Positions 37,876-61,000 are shown, numbered from the stretch's first letter. The stretch: 64,000 nt of DNA from Trichoplax adhaerens (GCF_000150275.1 NW_002060943.1:6440299-6504298), one strand, 5' to 3'. The notes: a model not told the origin generated them from the letters alone. Made by a program: numbers and translations.

Positions 37876-40800
37876 ATGTCCTCCTGTCGAAATTGGCCTT
37901 TATTAGCCATTTTAATTTGCACTATAGTATCAACAGTCCAATGCCAAACTTATTCAAGTTCTGCTTTCTGGAACGGAAAATATGGAGGTCAGCCCGGTTG
38001 GGTAACCTACGCTACTAGTCCTGAATGGAATGGAATGTACGAGTGGACCGGTGATAGCAACATGCGAGGTTATGATCGACGAGAAAGTGCTTATGGTACA
38101 TCATGTCCTTGTGCTAATAATTGCAATGACGAATTCTTGGATTGTACTAGCGTTACCGGAACAACTTTGTATGTTAATATTGGATTATGAATGTTTTTAT
38201 TATTCCGATCAATCTGTTTTAGATTAGACTTTCTTTTCAATGGATAATATCTGCTAATGATTAAAAATTGATAAATCAATGGTGAAATAGCAATATCTTA
38301 CATATCAGTATTATGCGTGTGCTTTCAGCATTAAATTTTTTTCTTTTCATTTGTAATGGACACGCAAGTAGTTCACGTTACCATTAGTGTATAGTGTGCG
38401 ATATAAATATCTTAAGTTGAAAGTGTCTTTGATTTACCTCTATAATCTACAATTATATACGTAAGGAAGCTGTAGATAAGGATTATACATCCTTTATTAC
38501 ATCATTGACGTGTCAATGCGGCCAATATAATTATTCGCTATGCAATTTAAGCGCAGATTGTTTATACGTAAGACGTTGATATCGTTTATAATTCAGCGTA
38601 CTTATCCCTATGGAAAGTCTAAATCTCGTTTGCAATTCGATTTTTCGTGTTTTTACTTTAAATCTTGATTATTTAAACTTTTAAATTTGGGACTTAGACT
38701 ATTGATAGGAATATACAGTATACTATTATTTACTGTAAATTAATTTGCCTAAAATTTTCGCATTTTTCACTTTATCATCTTTCACCAACAGGGCAATTAG
38801 GAGACAAACTGGTAAAGCTTTACGTGCGATTCCCAAATTTGCCTTTCCAAGTAATCCAGCAATTACATCCTTGTAAGTCGTTTAAAATGAAAACATTTTG
38901 AATACTAGTTGAATACTTAATCGAGTCTAAAAATTCTATGCAGGCTATTATAATATCGTTTAGAAAGTAGACCTGCCTGTGTTCATTATAGCAAAAGCAA
39001 TACACAAATTATCACTTTTACCTGGAACAATTTAAATGATATGAAGGACTAATAATAACTCTGACTCGTTTTAAACTACGCTTAGTATTTATCACCATTT
39101 ACTAACTCAGTATCATGTCTACTTTATGGTGAATATAATAGTATAAAACTTGCTCGATTCATAGAGTGCATTTCACCTATTTGTCGCAGATTTATTTAGA
39201 TAATATTATAGTGTGTGACTAATTTCCGAGATAGTAAAAAAAAGTAAATTATATATTGTGCACCTTTCTCTCGCAACAGGTAGTAGGAACCTTTGACCTA
39301 ATTTTGACAATCGTTCATAAATACTACTAATAACCACTGTATCATCATTTAAGTACAAATTGACAGTATCGACAGCTACAATGATAATAATTGAAGTTCG
39401 ACAAACAATTATGCTTATGTCTCTGATTGTACTTGAACTTTATAATCAAAAACGGTAATTAACGGTTTGTCGTTACTTCAGTTGAAAATTCAGTAATACA
39501 TTAATTTATCTTGCAATCATAATTTCATGAATCGTGATCAATTTAATATTACCAATATTTATCTTTCCAACTAAGTGCCATATGCACTCTATGATCGCCA
39601 AGATAGCATAGTAGGTGTAATTTGCTTGTTAGACTTCATAATCAACGATACGCCTTTTCCTATCTTTTACGCGAACGCTGGTGCTTTAAGGTTTATTACT
39701 TTTATGTACGATAATTAGTCTGATAGCCTTGAAAAGTTACACTAAGATATGGAACATTATATTACTTATTTGAATTTTTTTGTTACCTAACTTCACTATT
39801 TAATTTTGTTGCTGTTGCAATAGAAGCGTTTAGTTAATCATTACAAAATCTTGCAATGTATCATTTAGCGCATTAAAATGGCACCTTTCATTCAATTATA
39901 TGTATCCATGTCGTATAAACTAATAAGAAGTACGCAGATCATCGCTCAGGTTTCTTAGGTTTATAGCGGTCTGCTATAACTATAGCAGAAAAGTGCAATA
40001 CATCAAGAACTAGCGATTGTAATCCATCTTTGAAATATGTTGATTTGAACTCAATCGATAGCTAGCAAGTGTTTAAGGATTCTATGTTGCATGCAGCTAA
40101 TTAATAGATGTTGTAACCGACGTTATGCGGTATACTTCGTTTCTTAGAATTAAATGCTTCACGTTGATTTGGAGTCTGCCTATATCTACGGAGCGTTAAT
40201 ATGCTCCAACGGGCACTATCACTAAATGAATTTTGCGCGATTGCAATGCTACAGACTTTGACTGAGTACAGCCGCTATATCGATATACATACACAAAGTA
40301 ATGTATGCCTACTATTGATACAGTTACTGTTTGTAATATGAAATTAAGTCCTATATCTTCTTCTACCAACTTCGCTACTATAACTGTAAAGATTCTTCTT
40401 CGAATTACCTTGACTAAATAATAGTTTCGATTTCAATCGTAGTAGATCGTTAGATGATCAGAAATATAGATCATTTCATTAATGAGCTGTTCTAGCTCTT
40501 TTCCGTATCTGTAGTACATGAAATTATTCCTACAGGGTTGCATCAGCGTAGCTAATTTTACCATCATTTCAACATGTTTTTCATGTTCAAATGCAACAAT
40601 TTTTCAACGTCGTTATGACGTCAATCGGCGTTGTGGAAACGGCAATTCATATGCAAATTATTTGGTGTATGCCTTCCAGGCTCTTTTCATCCACTTGTTT
40701 ATGTAGCGGTGCCTAAGTAAAGATGCACTGCACAGTACCTTTGTGGTACACAAGCTATGGTCAATCAGGGACTTTAATCTATTTATGCATCTGTACAGTA

Positions 40801-49800: not shown

Positions 49801-52800
49801 CCAATTAAGAAATAGAGGGTGAGAATAGCCTATGATATCTTTTTGCTTACATTTAGGAATAATATCAGAGGACTGTTATAATAATACAAGTTTAGGGTGT
49901 GAAATTCTGTAGTCTTAATTTACTTAATAATTTTAATAGGTGGACAGCTACAATTCACGCTGCTATAACTTTTAATGGTACGGAAGTACTCACATTCGGT
50001 GCTGGTGATGAAATGTGGGTCTTCATTGATGGTTATATGATTGTTAGCTTACCGGATGCTTCCAATCCTGTTACGAAGCCTTGTCGTCAAGTATCGCTTT
50101 CACCTTTACTGGCGAGTGAGGGTGGCTATCCGGAAATTAGAGGCGGAGTAATTAGTGGCAACGAATGTGTACTTAACACAACTATTTCAACCAATGTTCC
50201 AAAATTCAAACTAGTCGTAAGTTGACTATAATTAATTTGAAATCATGTCTTTTAACGAAACTTAATTTTTGTCCATTAAATTTGTTATTTAACATATTTT
50301 AAATTCCCTTTTGTGTTTCTATTGTTTATTAACGCAAGTATTTGCTTGTACATTTCTCCTTAGGTTGGCTATACGTATCATCTCGACATATTCATTGCTC
50401 ATCGCGGTGTAACGTGCTCTACGCACTTCTTCTTCGAATCGCAAGGAGCAAAATTCACAAGAACTGTTCCTCCACTAGATTACGTTGTTCAAACTCCAGA
50501 AAATTTAAATGTTGGTAGTTTAATAACTCGCTTTAACTTAACAGGTTTGCAACTAAAAAAATCACCAGATCTTCAATTTTTTGACAATGGATGGTAATTT
50601 CATTATTTGATGTGCATCACGTTGATCTGTATGTGTTATTATAGATGCCTATAGCAATGGCACTACGTACATGCTACAAATCGAAAGTGGAAATACTTAC
50701 GGACATTTAACAATAAATAGTAACAATCCTACGGCTCCTTTGACTCCTGCTGCACCCACAACTTCGACCTTACCTACAGTGACAATAGGAAATCAAACAT
50801 TTGGTATCTGTCTTAATAGCCCACCACCATTATATACGAATGGCGCTCCTGCAACCCTGTTCGCCGTCACCACTACTGAGGCTATGGTTGTAAGTCAGGA
50901 ACCGCTAGACCATGAATTTGTTACTTTTTATGACTTTCTTATCAGCATAAATGATACCGGATATTCGCCACCCAGAATAGGACAAGCCATGATTAAGGTA
51001 AGTAATTTCAAGTTAAGTCGGTTTTTAAACTAAAAAATTTTTAGAATTTATAATATCACTAATGACTAATGAGAGTAAAAAATCAATTTCAGGTTTTGGT
51101 TCAAGATATAAATGATAACTGTCCGATAGCTACATCTGATTTACGAACGCATGTAGCTGTGACCGCTTTGCAAGTTCCTCCTCTCTTTCAAATTAACGCG
51201 ACAGATCGTGACAGTACAGATAACGGTGCAATGATATATACTACACAAGATATAACCGTGACGTAAGCGTAAAATATAGGACTAACTAGTTTTTATACAG
51301 AGAAAAATTTTGGTGACCTTGTAACGCCCTTTGTTACTATTTAATAGAGCTCCAGCAAATACTACGAAAACGATAGTATATACATTTACGGTCACGATAG
51401 TCGATAAAGGTACACCTACCCTTGGTACTTATCTCATGTTCAATGTGACAATGTTTGAAAACTGCAACACGTCACGAATGACATTCCCATTAAATGAAAG
51501 CTCTCCTGGTATTGTCGACGTTTACTTACGTATTCCTGGCTATATTACCTTTTCTAAGTACAGTGAGTACTGCATGAGTGAAATGATGTCAAATTCTCTT
51601 TGACGGCTGTTAGCCTCTATACTAACTTGTTATTCATTAATACTTAAACATTGTTCTATATACTCAATTTATCTTCATAATTTAGATGATACTGAGTGTG
51701 CTAGGTGTCCAACAAGTTATTACTGCTTCGGTGACGGACTAAAGCACAAATGTGGTTGTAATCCTAATACCACCGATTGTTCTGGTCGTAATGATACTAC
51801 ATATCATTCCTTTGGTGCATGGGATCACTGTGAAACATGTCCGCATGGCTGGATTTGTCATGATGGCTATGCTTTACCATGTCCTCCAGCTACTCATGCG
51901 AAATGTAACTACACGGTAAGTAGTTTAAATTGTATCGTGCCTAGGAATGCTAACGTAACAATTACGGTAATACATGAAAATACTATTTTCTCGATCATAT
52001 TTGGTAGTAATTATATTATATCATTCATTTTAGTACTGTCCACCAGTATGTGAGGCTTGCCCACCAGGTACTGCTTGCTATCAAGGCAAGATAACTGGAT
52101 GTAACCCTGGAACTTACGGAACTGGCGCTACTACTCAATGCGAACCTTGTCCAATCAATACCTATGCCTCCTCGTATAATGCTAGTTCTTGTCCATGCTG
52201 TCCGCATGGCACTCACAGCTTTGAAGGAGCATCGGTAATGTAATTATATCTTTTTGTGTCTATTGTAAATATCTTAATGACGTTAATTTTTTGGTTCATG
52301 ATACAATAATAATGTCATAATAATTTTGATACTCATAAACCTTTCTGTAGGATTGTGTATTTTGCCCTGAGGGTATGTATTCGAAAGGTGTCTGTGATCA
52401 TTGCCAAACGTGCTCTCCTGGTCAATGCCCTTGTGTGGTAGATAAGCCCTGTTTTCCGGAAGTAGAATGTCGTAACATTTTATATGATAACGGCACTTCA
52501 ACATTTGCATGTGGCAAATGCCCAGTTGGCTTCACTGGAGATGGAATCAATTGTACCGATATTAACGAGGTAACAATATCATTTTATGCTAATGTGCCTT
52601 CGCTTGTAATAATACTGCATATTCTGTATCTTACCTGTAATTGCCATAGATACCATACATAATACAGAATAAAACATTTTTACCTCAATTGCGATATTAT
52701 TACTTTTAATAGTGTGCAGCAGGAACATTTTGCTATGATCAAGCCAATTGTATCAATTTCGCTCCTGGTTTTGCTTGTGCAAGCTGTCCATTAGGCATGA

Positions 52801-55800
52801 CTGGAGATCAACCTTCAGGCATCGGTGTCGATTACGCCTTGTCTCACAAGCAGACCTGTACCGATATTGACGAATGTGCTCTCGGGGAACATGTTTGTGT
52901 GCCAAATGCTTATTGTAATAATACTATTGTAAGTCTACCACTTGATTAAACTATTCAACTTTTTCTACTAATAATTTTACACATATTGTCTAATACTAAC
53001 TACAATACATGCTATAAAATGACAAATTAGCATGTATCATTATAATTCAATTATACATCTATACATTTGTTATTTGTAGGGAGGATATCTATGTGGTAAT
53101 TGCTACGCTGGTTACTTTGGTAATGGATATACTGGCTGCATATTTGGTGACTTTTGCACCAGTAAGAAGGACAATTGCGATGGAAATGCTACGTGTATTT
53201 TTACAGGAATGGGAACATTCGTCTGCAGGGCATGTATTAACTTGATCATTACGGTTGTTAATGCCTTTGTATTAATTTCTAAGTATTAGCTATTAATTGA
53301 TGGACGCGTTATATTCCATTATAGTGCAATCCTGGTTATGCTGGTAATGGTGTACATTGTGGACAGGACGATGACGCTGATGGCTTTCCAATCGCTTACG
53401 TTTACTGTCATGACCGCGGTTGCCAGGCTGACAACTGTCCGATCGTTCCAAATAGTGGCCAAGAAGATGTTGATGGAGATACTTTAGGCAATACTTGCGA
53501 TTTTGACGATGATAATGATCTTATACTAGATATTACTGTAAGTTTCTTATATGTTATCAGCAAATTAAGTGTATATCTTCAATAGGTGAATTGTAAATGT
53601 TTATGCTATAATGTGTAACTTTATCTGTGGTCTTACTGTTAGGATAATTGCCCATTGGTCGCAAACACTGATCAGACAGACTCTGATGGCGATGGAGTTG
53701 GTGATGCTTGTGATAACTGTGTGTCTACTTCTAATCCTTCGCAGTTAGACAGCGATAATGACGGTGTTGGTGACGATTGTGATAGTGACAAAGATAACGA
53801 CGGAATTGCTAATGGCAGTGATAATTGCGAAGTTGTTGCTAATCCTTCACAAACAAATTCTGATGGAGATGCTTTTGGTGACGCTTGTGATAATTGTCCG
53901 TCGACTTCCAATCCAACTCAGGTAACTTATACTCAAGAAATAAACACTTTTATATCATAATGATAATTTCATTGTGTCTGAATATATTATACAATAAGTT
54001 GTAATGATACGAATTGCATTTCGTAATTGAACACCACTATAGTTGATAACATCGACGTAGACGTTTACATTTATTTTTACAACTTTAAAATTTTTTATAC
54101 TCAGGCTGACACCAATATGAATGGTGTTGGAGATGCTTGCGATTGTGCGAGTTTAGGTTATTTGTGCGATAGAGATGGTGATGGAATTATAAACACCATT
54201 GACAATTGTATCAACAATCCTAATCCATCACAAATTGATACAGATGGCGACGGCTTAGGTAAGCGTTATGACTTAGTTAAATAATATTTTGTACTACTAA
54301 AATCCTGCGATCGAAATAGTACAGTTCAATGTCGTTAATTAGCTATCCTTTACGCTATATTAGGAGATGAGTGCGATCCGGACGCAGACAATGACGGAAT
54401 CAGTAATGCGTTAGATAACTGCCGCTTATTAGCTAATGCTGATCAAAATGATACCAATTCCGCATCACCGGAAGGCGATGCATGCGACCCTGATTTTGAT
54501 GGTGATGGAATCAATGATGATCAAGACTCTTGCTTCTATAATAAGTTTTATATGCATACCAATTTCACAAGACACCAGGTTATATCATTAGGAGTCACTA
54601 ATACACCAGCGGCAGTATTTACAATAACTGATCAAGGCTCTGAAATAACTCAAACTAACGCTTCATCGCTGCCCTTTATCTTAGTTGGTAGGTTAATTTA
54701 TGTATTACTAGTCCATTATACAGTAACCTGATAATAAATTTCTTTTCATTAATAGGATATGATCAGTTTACAGCCGTCAACTTTACTGGTACTCTGTATG
54801 TCAATACTCAAGAATCGCGTAATTACATCGGTTTTGTGTTTGGATACCAAAACAATCGTCAATTTTATGTCGTTATGTGGCGCCATAAAAATATTAACTA
54901 TCAAGGCGGCTCAACTCCACCTGAAGCTGGTATTAAAGGAATTCAAATTAAGGTAATTACGATATAGTAAAAGGCAGCACTTTCCTGTATGTTTTTCTTT
55001 ACATTTTTTTAAGGTTATGGGTACTATTAGGTATTTTTGGACACAAAAAGATTATATGAAGAAATAAGTGTCTGTCATATGCATCTCATTTTTCTCTCTT
55101 TTTTATCTAGCGAGTTAATTCTACTACTGGTCCAAGCAATGCTCTTGCACAGGCATTGTTTGACACATACACTACTGCAAATCAAGTAAGCATAACTATA
55201 GCCTTCTGCCAGCTATAAGATCATCTATAGGGATATTCATGGTATTACTTCGCGCATTTCATATATGATTAATCGCCTTTGATTACCTGTAGGTTAAGTT
55301 ATTGTGGCAAGATCCAGCCATGAGAGGTTGGGAACACGAAGTAGCATACTCCTTCCATCTGGTCCACCGACCATCTCTGGGGCTAATTCGGTAATAACAT
55401 TACATACGTGTAAAACCATAATATTTTCAACATAATTTTAAAGTGATCTTCCTAAGTCTTTAAATTATGAATGTAATTGTAGGGTCTGGATATACCATGG
55501 CGCAACTCTATTAACGGACTCAGGAAATGTTTTTGATACCTCATACTCGGGTGGCCGATTGGGAGCGTTTGTTTACAATCAACCTGGAGTTATTTGGTCG
55601 CGATTATCGTATAAATGTATAGACCGGTGAGTAAATGCTAGTTTATGACTATGTTTACTATATAAATATTCTAAAATACAACCACGTTAAAATAAAATGT
55701 AATTTCTGTTTACTAGCATGAATCAAGCGTTGTCTCTTGATGGCGCTTCCGCTATCCGATTGCCTTCTTTTCAATCCATGTCATTGCTGAAGAGGTTGGT

Positions 55801-56929
55801 ATCTAAAATACTTAAATTACTGCAGCATATCTGGTAGAGTTTTTAATAAGAAGACACCTTTCATTTTGCTAGTTTCACTATGGGTGCCTGGGTTCATTTG
55901 CCTTCAGGATATACTACGGACAAGGAGCCAATCCTTTGTACTTTAAACAGTACTGCCTGTCTATACATTTCTAATAGGTAATGATCCTTGAATAATTACG
56001 TTTGTTAAAAAGTGTCGCTATCATAGTCTACGGAGTATCTCCAATTACTGAGCTACTATTACGCTAAACTTAGGCGCCTTACTGGCCAATATGGCGATAA
56101 GACCGCTGTATCATCGACGGATCTACCGGGTGGTGTTTGGAATCACGTAACTTTTAGATATGATGCTTCCAATCAACAGATAGATATCTTTGAAAATGGA
56201 ACTGTAGTAGCTACAACCACTGGTGTACCAATTTATGAATTTGTGAGTTACATTGAATTGCAAGAGTAGGCATTTAGCTCATTAATTATAATGGAACGAT
56301 AGTTAACTAATTCTCTATCCTTGGCTATAGTACAACGAAACTTTCCTATATATTGGTAGGGACCAATCTAATTTCATAACCGGAACATTAGATGAAGTAT
56401 GTCAAAAATATATTAATTTTACTGATATTCCCGTAACATTTTTAGGATATGACTCTTCTCGCTCTGATCGTGTTGTTAACATACATAATTATCTGTGCAA
56501 TAGGTTCGTATCTGGAGTATAAAATTGATAGGGTCACCATCCATAATTGATTATTGGAAATACCCTGGTTTAACACGAGAACTGCATAAGAAAATTATTC
56601 ATGCTCATTACGACATGGATCTTACTGCAGAACATTTACTGGTCGATAAGGACATTTATGCGTTCCATGGTCAATTTGAAGGTGGTCCACAAATAGTTTA
56701 TGTGAGTACTATCAATCCGTAACATTGTACGACTGTAACATTAGTGATATCGCTTTACGTAATTTGGCTAAATTTATCCATATTATCCGATTGCACCTAG
56801 GTAATTAAAATATTTGGTTTATTTTTTTAGAGTTCATTAGAAGAAGGTCGATTCCAAGCGACATATCCGAACAACCGCCGTCGTCGCCGAAGCGTCCAAG
56901 ATAGTACTGATGTTCACATAGAATTGTAA
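37876..56929 (+). CDS. Mega-thrombospondin-like secreted protein, ~66 exons, ~2,750 aa (LRR array-LRRCT-FN3-fibro-slime/PA14-2x cadherin-Cys-rich-EGF-TSP3-TSP_C-LamG-like)
   Basis: Continuous in-phase chain of exons from [23 protein letters not shown] (signal peptide; exon 37876-38168) to ...[17 protein letters not shown]-stop (exon 56831-56929). The TSP type-3 repeats and the GFVFGYQ...FYVVMW C-terminal domain are unmistakable. The length was summed by hand and is approximate. Confidence 0.92.
38792..48652 (+). CDS. Mega-TSP segment: 36 phase-2 LRR exons (mostly 66-87 nt, modal 72 nt) plus the LRRCT exon 48465-48652
   Basis: Examples: 41745-41816 ([23 protein letters not shown]), 45087-45158 ([23 protein letters not shown]), 47852-47923 ([23 protein letters not shown]). 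The cap reads [11 protein letters not shown]...CATP...IFTC. Confidence 0.92.
48770..49202 (+). CDS. Mega-TSP segment: fibronectin type III domain (exons 48770-48948, 49076-49202)
   Basis: [22 protein letters not shown]...WQYHANC...[14 protein letters not shown]...[11 protein letters not shown] fits the FN3 P-N...W..P...Y...GT.Y...S.P pattern. Confidence 0.75.
49336..50450 (+). CDS. Mega-TSP segment: fibro-slime / PA14-like domain (exons 49336-49408, 49501-49818, 49940-50216, start of 50364-50544)
   Basis: [15 protein letters not shown]...QWF...[10 protein letters not shown]...[32 protein letters not shown]...[14 protein letters not shown]...STHFFFES. Confidence 0.75.
50475..51460 (+). CDS. 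Mega-TSP segment: two cadherin repeats
   Basis: Calcium-linker motifs in order: [39 protein letters not shown] (exons 50364-50544, 50645-50997, 51092-51262, 51348-51562). Confidence 0.85.
51686..53365 (+). CDS. Mega-TSP segment: GCC2/GCC3 (ephrin-receptor-like) Cys-rich repeats followed by four EGF/cbEGF domains
   Basis: [14 protein letters not shown]...[16 protein letters not shown]; then PCFPEVEC...[28 protein letters not shown]...[22 protein letters not shown]. Confidence 0.88.
53366..55626 (+). CDS. Mega-TSP segment: thrombospondin type-3 Ca-binding repeats and TSP C-terminal L-lectin domain
   Basis: [34 protein letters not shown] (repeated), [17 protein letters not shown]...YIGFVFGYQ...FYVVMW, LLWQDP...GW...[33 protein letters not shown]. 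Confidence 0.96.
55717..56929 (+). CDS. Mega-TSP segment: concanavalin-A/LamG-like (pentraxin-like) domain and C-terminal tail
   Basis: NQALSLDG...SFTMGAWV...WNHVTFRYD...IDIFENG...LYIGRD...GTLDEVRIWS...HYDM; tail [19 protein letters not shown]. Confidence 0.85.
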
Positions 56930-58084
56930 TCGCATATTACTACGTCAATTTTATTCACTCTATTGGCATAACGTAGCAAGTTGTGCCCCCTTTGAAATAC
57001 ATTTTGTTTAGTATCATTTTAGTTGTAAATGTATATTCTGACTAATGGTCCAATAATGCATTACGTTATTGTTCTGAGACTATTTTGCAGTAAAGTAGCA
57101 AACTATACTAGACGAATATGGTACTTTTAAGCACTATATGATAGCTCAGAAAGAAAATTTAGTCTTTCAATGTGTAACTGTTGATGTATTATTGGATTCC
57201 ATATCCATTTTTTTCTTATATAAATATTTAACTACCTTCAATGAATTAATAGCCTTGTAATGTCTAGATGGTATCTGACGAAAAAGACAAATCATTTGTC
57301 TTGAAGAATTTTAAAAAGCATTTGCCAGAACTCAAATTTACATATAGTTTCATTACCGTCATTCGATCCATGTTTACAGTAATGCACTATAAACGTGATA
57401 ATTTTTTTAATTTTGCAACTTTTGATAAAAAAATACCCAGCTCAAAATATTCTGTAGCTCAGTTTTCATATTACGTGTCTATTTTTAAATGTTATTAAGA
57501 ATCATATCTTTTATATCTTTATCTTTTTTTATCTATCGGATAAGAGATTGCGTCTTTATCGATTTAATTACACCCTTATCGGTTGTTAAAGTTTTAGTTG
57601 AACTACGAATTCGGTATCCAATACTTATTTAAGAAACCGAACTCAGTTCAGTTGCTAACACTATTGATTATAACAATTGTTTAAAATTGAATCTGTATGT
57701 AAAAATTATCAAGAGAGTAAATGTTAAATAAATACTATACTTCTAAAATAGAACAAAAATAATATGAGATGTAAAAAATTTGAGACCCAGCCTATGTTAA
57801 AATTTGGCGGATCGAGATAACAGTTAACCAATATAGCGTCGTTACAAGGTAGTAAAATGACAATTTTATCTATAGTTACCAATACATTCTTGTAAATACT
57901 GTATATACTGTACTTTATATATACAATGGTTGGATACAATGGAAGGTCGTATAATATTTGTTTAAAATGTAGTCAAGTAACGGTGAAGTATACTAATACG
58001 AGCATCTTTCTTGTAATTTACAAATTTCGGTAACCCAACATCCGCTATTTAAAGTTAGTTTTGTGTGTCTATGGAAGTCACAAA

Positions 58085-61000
58085 TTAAATTTCTTCCATC
58101 AGATCTTCAGCTCCCGGTAGAGCTGAACTGTTTCTTTTGAGACGTCCTTGTGATGAATTTGACCTATTAAATTGAAGTGCGGTAGTTATACGAAGATATA
58201 CAGTCATTGAAAAACTATTTGATTACTTTAATTTTCATGAGATATCGTACTAAACTCATACCCCGTGCTATTATTTCTAGATAATTGACTGGAATTTTTA
58301 CGTAGAGAACGGGTTTTAGGTAAAGCTGGAAGATCGTCAGCATCCGACTTTATTGCTGCTCCTCGGCGCTTTCTCCTATTTATAAAGAACATCAAGTCAA
58401 CAACAATATCCCACTTATTTGCAATTCTACACTAAGCTTACAAAAATCTGAATCACATTGACTGAAACCACTTTATTAATACCTCTTAGCTGTAGGTGCG
58501 ACACAAATATTACTAACAGTATCTTCAAGCATTAAACTTGAACTCGGTAAGCTATTTTCATTTTCAGTGGAGGTCGAGCTAGTACCAGGTCCACTATGAC
58601 TTGTACCCGGCAATAATAAATCGTCTTCTTCCTCTTTCTCGACTTTACATAGTGACAGAATAAGCAACGTTTACATATAGTGTTTTATTCCTTATGTTTA
58701 TTTACTATAGCGAAATTTATACCTTTAATTTTCTCCTCCATCTTGACACTGGTAGGAAACGTGGGCATATTCCTAACTAAAAAAAGGAACAGCCCATGTA
58801 CCAGTCAAGATAAAAAAACACCACAATAGTTGTCAACAATACTGCCAGAATTCTTTTAATGCCACAGCATTAATTGTATGCAGTAGCAAATTAATTACCT
58901 TGATTTGTAAGTGTCCTAATTTTATTCTTCTTGCTATTGAGTACTCGAATGAACTATACAATTTACATGATACCGATATTAGTATTATTTATTTGCAAAG
59001 GGATTTTTCATTAATCAATACCATGCAGTAGCAAATACAGTATAAAGTATTCTAGCTGAAGTTAATTCTCTGATACCTTGGCTTTATCACTTACTTTGCC
59101 ATACATGTCCACTTCTAAGTTCTCTTTTGTAACTACAAATTCCTCGAGATTCTAATTTTGTATACATTATATATTCAATTTAATGAGTCACTTAGCATTA
59201 AAAATATGGGTATTTCTACGTTGTCCTAACTTACCTTGAGAGATTCAGCTCTCTCGCTAGATAGACGTTCATTTGTAGAATTAAGCGATGCAATATTCAT
59301 CTAAAAGTGATATTAATGGCAACTGGAGTAAGGATACGCAATCAATATACACTTTATTTCTAAAATATCGAGTATAATTAGCTACATGGCAAATGGACCG
59401 TTACAAAAAAAGTTACAAAGTAAATTACTTTTAAGTTCGAAATTTGGCTCAAGCTGAAATCAAATAATTCGCTTATAATTGCTTTCGGGTCAGTGACTGC
59501 GGCCATTTTTAATTTACCAAGCTGAAACTAAAGGAAGTGACAGCAAGGATATTAATCACTTTCATCGATTTGAATTTCCTTTCATCAGAATTGTTAAGAC
59601 CAATAGGATTGGAAACAAATGTGAAAGTTGCATCATTTTGTCAATATACTTTATGATGTCTAATTCATCTACTGCACATTACCCAGCTTTAGTATTAGCT
59701 TTAATATTAGAATATCATAAAGCTTACTTTCATATCTTCGCTTCTTAGGTACTTCTTCCAAGCAAACTATGCCAAGAGAAAGATTATTGTTATTAGTCAA
59801 TTAATGCCTAATCTTTGAATAAAATCTAAATGCAGCTATGCATCCGTTCGAATAATTCAATATCAAGTAATGCATGATGACGACGCAATTTCAATTTACA
59901 ACAGTTTTAGGGATGATCATTTGCAGAGTCTGTCATCACTTTTAATCATGTCTTCAATTTTAATAGCAACCTCGACAGTGTTATGGTCCGGCAGCAAGGA
60001 GACGCCGAAGTGAAAATTAGAATTGGCGGAAGAATTTGCTGTAAATGCTTTCTTTGTCTGTTTTAAATATTCATGCAAGTCCATTTGAACACTTCTAGCC
60101 AATCGGTTAGCAACACCATCGGTAACTGTAAGAGACATCAAGAAAGAATAAGCAAGTGTAGAGCATAGCGGCGTGAAATTGATCAGCCGAATTACGTACG
60201 GTAGCGGAGAGGTAAGCAATCATCCTAGTCAAGTATGAATAGCTAGTAGAACTATTTGCATGGAAAGTCTTCTCTAAATTAGTTAAGGTACAGTACTGTA
60301 CAGTATGTATACGAGCTTATCTAATACATTACTTCCTAATACAATATCATTTATATTGGCATGGAAAATCCTATATAAACTAGGTAAGATATACTGCTTA
60401 CGTATGAGCTGATATTGATTATTTTATCTCATAATACGACACTATTATTATTACTATTTTTGACCATCTAGTTGGTTTGTTCGACTAATGTCAATGCAAT
60501 GGATATCATTCAGATCCTCTTCTAGCCCATTATAGGATGTAATCAAGACAGTAGACACACGATGTAATTTGCGTCAATGAATTCTAATATAACTCATAGT
60601 CAACTACTTGTAGAACCAACTGGTTGCGCCATGACGACTCTGTTGCCGTCCAATCCGTGTGATGTTTCCAATCGATATTAATCCATGGGATTGTGTTGTA
60701 GTGCAGCATAGAATGCTGTTAAGAAAGTACACAGCATATAATTTGCTTGAATCATTTCAAATGCAACTTATAGACTTAAAAGAGGAGTACTTATTCTAGT
60801 AGTGTGCAACAAATGGCCTGTTATCCCTAACTGGCTGCACAATGACAACTCTATCTATAGCCGTCCAATCCGTATAATGATTCCAATCGATGCTAATCAA
60901 TCGGATTAAGTTGTAGTGCGGCATAGGATGCTGCCAAGAAAGTACACACCATGTCATTTGCTTGAATCATTTGAAATGCAACAGACAGAATTGTAAGAGG

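Follow-up and report, generated by a model that had tools for sequence, protein, structure and literature searches.

Furin-type and HXEL-class motifs on the terminal exon of the Trichoplax adhaerens mega-thrombospondin: a possible removable ER-retrieval tag

The mega-thrombospondin gene and its terminal exon

The window (the whole 64,000-nt stretch of the Trichoplax adhaerens genome that was analysed) carries on its plus strand a long multi-exon gene, whose features are collected in Table 1. Pfam profiles were run on its exons one by one and returned matches to EGF_CA (E 1e-07, single exon), TSP_3 (E 3.6e-19 and 2.6e-13), TSP_C (54758-54952, E 3.1e-23; 55293-55388, 8.5e-11; 55484-55624, 1.6e-17, the last reaching position 198 of the 198 positions of the profile) and, on exon 56075-56242, Laminin_G_3 (E 1e-06; 29.4 bits against a cut-off of 27.6). 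A cadherin match on a single exon (E 0.0058) lay below the threshold, and exon 49896-50222, scanned alone, gave no Pfam match at E <= 0.01. EGF_CA, TSP_3 and TSP_C followed by a second ConA-like domain and a short tail make up the layout of a mega-thrombospondin (mega-TSP); all mega-TSPs possess the second ConA-like domain, after which comes what has been called a "terminal, nonconserved sequence" (PMC6526912).

Which mega-TSP is it? Three motif strings given for the T. adhaerens protein TaMT (Suppl. Fig. 2 of PMC6526912) match exons of the window; for the N-terminal part of the mega-TSP layout (signal peptide, about 1,000 aa of LRRs, one or more central cadherin domains) this match gives indirect support. 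TSP_C is present as a single copy in the assembly searched (105.6 Mb, 1414 contigs). Thus, the host gene is the published TaMT (jgi Triad1 51999, 2,494 aa; Shoemark et al. 2019, PMC6526912), encoding about 2,500 residues with EGF, type-3, TSP_C and second ConA-like domains. The Hydra mega-TSP, HmMT, was also considered as the identity and was rejected, since its motif rows differ from the window exons where the TaMT rows match. The predicted signal peptide, read by eye at 37876, agrees with the initial annotation, which had described an extracellular-type protein entering the secretory pathway.

RNA contigs from four RNA-type runs of three studies (two of the runs are on record as RNA) were aligned to 53000-58900. 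The contigs bear out all upstream joints of the gene's 3' part. They connect the TSP_C exons to the ConA-like exons and these to the tail; the joints of the exons between 55717 and 56701 are GT..AG in all four runs, with phases that are consistent when counted back from the stop codon. Through the joint 55626/55717 the transcript avoids an in-frame TGA at the TSP_C end and continues into the extra ConA-like domain. Here the TSP_C exon ends CG/GTGAGT (the slash marks the splice site), and the unspliced product would read ...SYKCIDR-stop, ending where canonical thrombospondins end, which hints that the extra domain was added by splicing beyond an old stop. Upstream, a joint at 53229-53325 was scored as GG..TA with one ambiguous base; shifted by one, it is a GC-AG intron (AGG/GCATGT...TATAG/T), used in all four runs.

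The terminal exon encodes, in order, ...YPNN, five arginines and 12 residues ending in HIEL (codons 56915-56926), and the window translation places the TAA stop of the mega-TSP at 56927-56929. The joint 56701/56831, a GT..AG junction that skips 129 nt, was found in the contigs of 4/4 runs, and none of these runs shows a variant letter or indel within 56831-56929. From 56831 the contigs pass through the stop without a break, as far as 58161 in three runs; the fourth contig ends at 57739. An alternative terminal exon was sought and rejected: the RNA contigs contain only the 56701/56831 joint, and no LamG-like open frame was found downstream of the tail on the plus strand. RNA contigs can conceal rare isoforms, and a minor alternative end may exist. 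The exon, the junction and the stop given in the initial annotation are therefore upheld by four runs from three studies, and the different terminal exon that it had named as a refutation was not seen in the contigs or in the scan of downstream frames. Beyond the 3' untranslated region lies a convergent minus-strand neighbour (58181-58900, with a CT..AC joint at 58374/58482), to which RNA contigs bridge from the mega-TSP 3' untranslated region; one run has a 6-nt TCTTCT insertion at 58623.

The tail sequence occurs once in the 105.6-Mb assembly. The genome has about 31% G+C, and the five arginines (56876-56890) are all encoded by CGN codons. By rough residue frequencies, a proteome should contain far less than one protein that ends in H-x-E-L and has R-x-[KR]-R among its last 30 residues; the motif pair was chosen post hoc. 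In raw genomic DNA, about 27 chance occurrences of R-x-[KR]-R ... H-x-E-L-stop would be expected, which in the absence of gene models look like true ones.

Table 1 Features of the mega-thrombospondin gene in the window (positions counted from its first letter)
Feature	Position	Strand	Details
Start codon and predicted signal peptide	37876..37944	+	ORF listing; hydrophobic core and small-residue site read by eye
TSP type-3 calcium-binding repeat exons	53643-53921, 54105-54258, 54364-54687	+	Pfam TSP_3; RNA joints; TaMT motif strings
TSP_C (L-lectin-like), 4 exons	54756..55626	+	Pfam TSP_C; RNA joints; last exon ends ...SYKCID-R
Splice donor GTGAGT with in-frame TGA (55628-55630)	55627..55632	+	used in 4/4 RNA runs
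Second ConA-like / Laminin_G_3 domain and conserved linker, 5 exons	55717-55794, 55873-55977, 56074-56242, 56331-56396, 56504-56701	+	
Last intron, 129 nt, GT..AG	56702..56830	+	donor GTGAGT at 56702; acceptor AG 56829-56830
Terminal coding exon	56831..56929	+	32 codons (56831-56926, phase 0) and TAA
RRRRR-S, furin/PC-type R-X-[KR]-R/S motif	56876..56893	+	CGC CGT CGT CGC CGA AGC
H-I-E-L-stop, HXEL-class KDEL-like C-terminus	56915..56929	+	CAC ATA GAA TTG TAA
3' untranslated region, about 1.2 kb	56930..58161	+	RNA contigs; abuts convergent minus-strand gene

Conservation of the tail within Placozoa

These data raise the question of whether the two motifs are kept in evolution. An orthologue was reached through a 68-aa fragment matched by exon 56504-56701, which led to two ENA metagenome contigs (L001 and L002) that together cover exons 11-14 of a placozoan orthologue. 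Splice sites and stop are at matching positions in L001, whose last intron has the form GTAAGT...TAG. Amino-acid differences from L001 amount to 4/56 in exon 11, 3/22 in exon 12, 3/66 in exon 13 and 4/32 in the tail, so that 28/32 tail residues are identical (L001:936-1031); all four tail differences lie in the last 11 residues. RRRRR-S is identical with one synonymous change, followed by V in the window (RRRRR/S-V) and by L in L001 (RRRRR/S-L), and the protein ends H-L-E-L-stop in L001 against H-I-E-L-stop in the window. The initial annotation had made its reading depend on conservation of the motifs in orthologues; both, RRRRR-S and H-[I/L]-E-L, are kept in this one diverged placozoan contig. 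The count of five arginines is also the same in the diverged relative, so the run is not a freely slipping triplet repeat.

How much constraint does this indicate? Four-fold degenerate sites differ at 35/68 positions (52%), that is, silent sites are near saturation. A crude neutral simulation run with this divergence retained H.EL in 0.8% of the trials and gave at most four changes in the last 11 residues in 0.14%; in no trial did the first 21 residues of the tail remain unchanged. Because the observed conservation is so rarely matched under neutrality, the tail is, as far as one comparison and a simple model go, under purifying selection within Placozoa, and at the sequence level the arginine run is constrained as much as the globular domain that precedes it. 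The simulation reveals constraint and does not indicate which function is constrained. Taken together with the machinery and the docking model described below, the motif pair on the tail is real, selected and mechanistically possible.

Such constraint can also be read without any trafficking role. The tail may be kept for the fold or as a surface on which the second ConA-like domain or a matrix partner docks, with the arginines forming a basic glycosaminoglycan- or cell-surface-binding patch and HIEL being incidental; we regard this as rather unlikely. Constraint extends over the whole region: the 87 residues before the tail show 96% identity between the two placozoans, and with a single orthologue and a C-terminal region conserved at about 95%, the motifs are not clearly better kept than the sequence around them. 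Within the C-terminal region, change is in fact fastest in the last 11 residues. Within them, on the other hand, H, E and L and the stretch D-S-x-D-V are kept while 4/8 of the residues other than H, E and L have changed, and no codon of H, E or L has changed despite 52% four-fold divergence, which speaks against an incidental terminus. By eye, the end of exon 13 (56600-56701, ...GGPQIVY) resembles the opening strands of a further LamG_3-type domain and then stops; this resemblance favours a structural role for the region, and the segment may be what is left of a third ConA-like domain such as coral sushi-TSPs have.

Outside Placozoa, the wording "terminal, nonconserved sequence" of PMC6526912 argues against conservation of the tail and likewise favours incidental motifs, as no conservation of the terminal sequence among phyla is reported there; the supplement of that paper shows three internal motif panels and no C-termini. 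A scan of JGI metagenomes with the exon-13 alignment found no relative. With exon 54366-54686 as the query, the best 150 matches were all multi-repeat type-3 proteins, among which phmmer found no TSP_C or tail match.

Proposed retrieval, cleavage and mechanism

Another important question is whether the genome encodes the partners that both motifs would need. For the C-terminus, three ER_lumen_recept (KDEL-receptor) loci were found. One (L005, on contig C1413) is a canonical intron-split receptor. The other two (L003 and L004; G000:C1410:6045034-6045459 and 6050147-6050575) are tandem intronless divergent paralogues of 237 and 241 aa, about 5 kb apart; by eye, both carry Lys where the canonical receptor has the arginine of the Tyr-Arg pocket, and their ligand range may differ from that of the canonical receptor. 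BiP-like HSP70 and calreticulin genes end in KDEL, which indicates that the retrieval system is in use and that HIEL is a non-canonical variant here. The classic retrieval pattern is [KRHQSA]-[DENQ]-E-L, and the Ile at position -3 places HIEL outside it. That bona fide ER residents of this genome use KDEL counts against a tag and in favour of incidental motifs; the departure of HIEL from the classic pattern also counts against a tag. Still, the protein combines a predicted signal peptide with a free H-I-E-L C-terminus of the K/H/R-x-E/D-L kind, and HXEL endings, including the HIEL of human CES1, are documented ER-retrieval signals (PMC5818367). The assignment of HIEL to a class of KDEL-receptor ligands, made in the initial annotation by analogy with CES1, is thus supported, and a free lumenal H-x-E-L end of a documented ligand class speaks against incidental motifs.

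One additional piece of evidence was provided by a complex prediction that paired the 32-residue tail with one of the intronless divergent paralogues (L003:1411-2121) and not with the canonical L005. The predicted complex scored 0.69 against 0.15 for the best of three controls; the score mark had been reached by 51/78 solved complexes and 2/108 mismatched pairs, and peptides lie outside this calibration. Model runs agreed in at least 65% of the contacts, with a pLDDT of at least 48 for the partner. The modelled interface consists of tail residues 25-32 in the receptor pocket, where the terminal Leu, Glu and His face positions that align by eye with the Arg, Asp, Glu and Trp of the known KDEL pocket. 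We infer from this model that the tail could bind a KDEL receptor. Since the structure of a KDEL-receptor/peptide complex has been solved, the high score may come from the predictor reproducing that complex. That the model engages exactly the last eight residues weighs against an incidental HIEL.

For the arginine run, RRRRR/S agrees with R-X-[K/R]-R with a permissive P1' residue (Ser), and one locus (L028; Peptidase_S8 E 1.1e-30, P_proprotein E 8.8e-26, Furin-like_2 E 1.2e-52) is a furin/PC5-type convertase gene with many furin-like Cys-rich repeats. Its last exon (G000:C1412:5304500-5313500) has an open frame of >1,430 aa with furin-like and growth-factor-receptor Cys-rich repeats, unusually long for a PC5/PACE4-type tail. 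The convertase-type motif before Ser described in the initial annotation is thus present and kept in L001, and a candidate enzyme is encoded. From the motif we infer that RRRRR/S may be cleaved and that cleavage may affect secretion; the same five arginines could also be a glycosaminoglycan-binding patch, which counts against the tag.

Cleavage could also be the only function of the tail. C-terminal trimming or release of a short propeptide occurs in many matrix and zona-pellucida-type proteins, and a site that fits R-X-[KR]-R/S and is invariant in the second placozoan, together with a convertase gene, would suffice for it, HIEL then being irrelevant. Trimming as the sole function is very unlikely in our estimate, since it leaves unexplained both the retention of H, E and L while half of the other eight residues of the last 11 changed and the docking result.

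These observations make it possible to suggest, tentatively and with rather less than even confidence, that an HXEL tag retrieves TaMT through a KDEL receptor and that a furin/PC5-type cut at RRRRR/S removes the tag late in the pathway. On sequence and model grounds, a removable ER-retrieval tag on the tail is plausible. The H-[I/L]-E-L end would act as an HXEL-class ligand of the KDEL receptor, probably a weaker one, and tagged TaMT that reached the early Golgi would be carried back, resulting in a larger and prolonged ER pool. In the late Golgi, a furin/PC5-type convertase would cut RRRRR/S, 12 residues from the end; TaMT escaping retrieval would thereby lose its tag and pass beyond further retrieval.

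What, then, would set the output? The initial annotation had proposed that the precursor is recycled until folded. KDEL receptors are not known to sense folding; what they read is the C-terminus and pH. A folding gate therefore does not follow from established KDEL-receptor biology, and this part of the proposal is unsupported. Output would instead be set by the escape fraction and by receptor occupancy, as proposed for MANF and CRELD2, and not by sensing of the folded state.

A different reading dispenses with the switch. TaMT may be mainly intracellular, in the ER or early secretory pathway, with HIEL as a plain retrieval signal and the arginine run uncut or cut only in a few escapees. To our knowledge, placozoans have no basal lamina by electron microscopy, and the conserved HXEL end and the docking model suit such a residence. 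Vertebrate thrombospondins overexpressed in muscle are found largely in the ER and vesicular network, where they act via ATF6-alpha and vesicle traffic, a role common to Drosophila Tsp (PMC5063588). We nevertheless hold a mainly intracellular TaMT to be unlikely: its architecture is that of an adhesive matrix protein, the cnidarian mega-TSP is treated as an ECM component (PMC6526912), and the conserved R-R-R-R-R/S-V/L fits the preference of convertases, a gene for which is present. In a fuller form of the removable-tag proposal, which on sequence and model grounds we consider somewhat unlikely, the tail would be a natural protease-removable KDEL-type tag, with HXEL keeping a large ER pool, either for metered release or for an ancestral intracellular thrombospondin role, and the convertase committing escapees outward.

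Meaning and comparison with known systems

The TaMT gene and its domain layout were known already (PMC6526912); new relative to that paper are the motif pair on its tail and the conservation of that pair within Placozoa. The initial annotation had not recognised such a system as described for thrombospondins; PMC6526912 does not mention the motif pair, and the host gene is the published TaMT. If the motifs are incidental, the finding amounts to a confirmed 3' structure of a published gene. If the removable tag is real, it would be a native case in which a matrix-type protein is secreted under the control of a protease that removes its ER-retrieval signal, and a native counterpart of engineered "cleave the KDEL to secrete" switches. 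It would also bear on a debated point. Thrombospondins have conserved roles within the ER and vesicular network (ATF6-alpha, trafficking of membrane complexes), and a retrieval signal on the sole TSP-family gene of an early-branching animal that shows no basal lamina would make the age of the intracellular role testable.

Among the described mega-TSPs, TaMT is the same gene with the same layout (signal peptide, EGF, type-3, TSP_C, second ConA-like domain, short end). PMC6526912 calls this end nonconserved and mentions neither KDEL nor furin, whereas here the tail is kept within Placozoa with both motifs. Carboxylesterases (CES1 with HIEL, Ces1d with HVEL) share the tetrapeptide class, the lumenal location and a cleavable signal peptide. 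They are resident enzymes without an upstream convertase site; TaMT, in contrast, is a giant matrix-type protein whose signal is predicted from sequence.

CRELD2 and MANF/CDNF are closer in that they carry a KDEL-like end on proteins that also act extracellularly, as may be the case for TaMT. CRELD2 is described as both ER-resident and secreted, with more secretion under ER stress (PMC10018036). Like TaMT, CRELD2 is Cys-rich and has EGF-like domains. Release of CRELD2 and MANF/CDNF is generally attributed to competition for the receptor or to masking of the tail rather than to its being cut off by a protease, and, unlike in TaMT, no convertase site is known to adjoin their tails.

AB toxins of the Pseudomonas exotoxin A type also combine a furin site with a KDEL-like end. 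These toxins travel in the opposite direction, into the ER; their active fragment retains the KDEL-like end, and the furin site lies at a distance from the tail, so the resemblance is one of motifs only. In our literature searches for a natural convertase-removable KDEL-like tag, only engineered systems (PMC8904541) and toxins were found. Among the engineered systems, lumER/membER (Praznik et al. 2022, PMC8904541) follow the same logic as that suggested for TaMT: a C-terminal KDEL holds back the cargo, which is secreted once a protease site just upstream is cut. They are synthetic and chemically controlled, with a TEV-type protease acting in the ER, whereas in TaMT an endogenous convertase would act in the late Golgi, and cleavage would follow escape rather than cause it.
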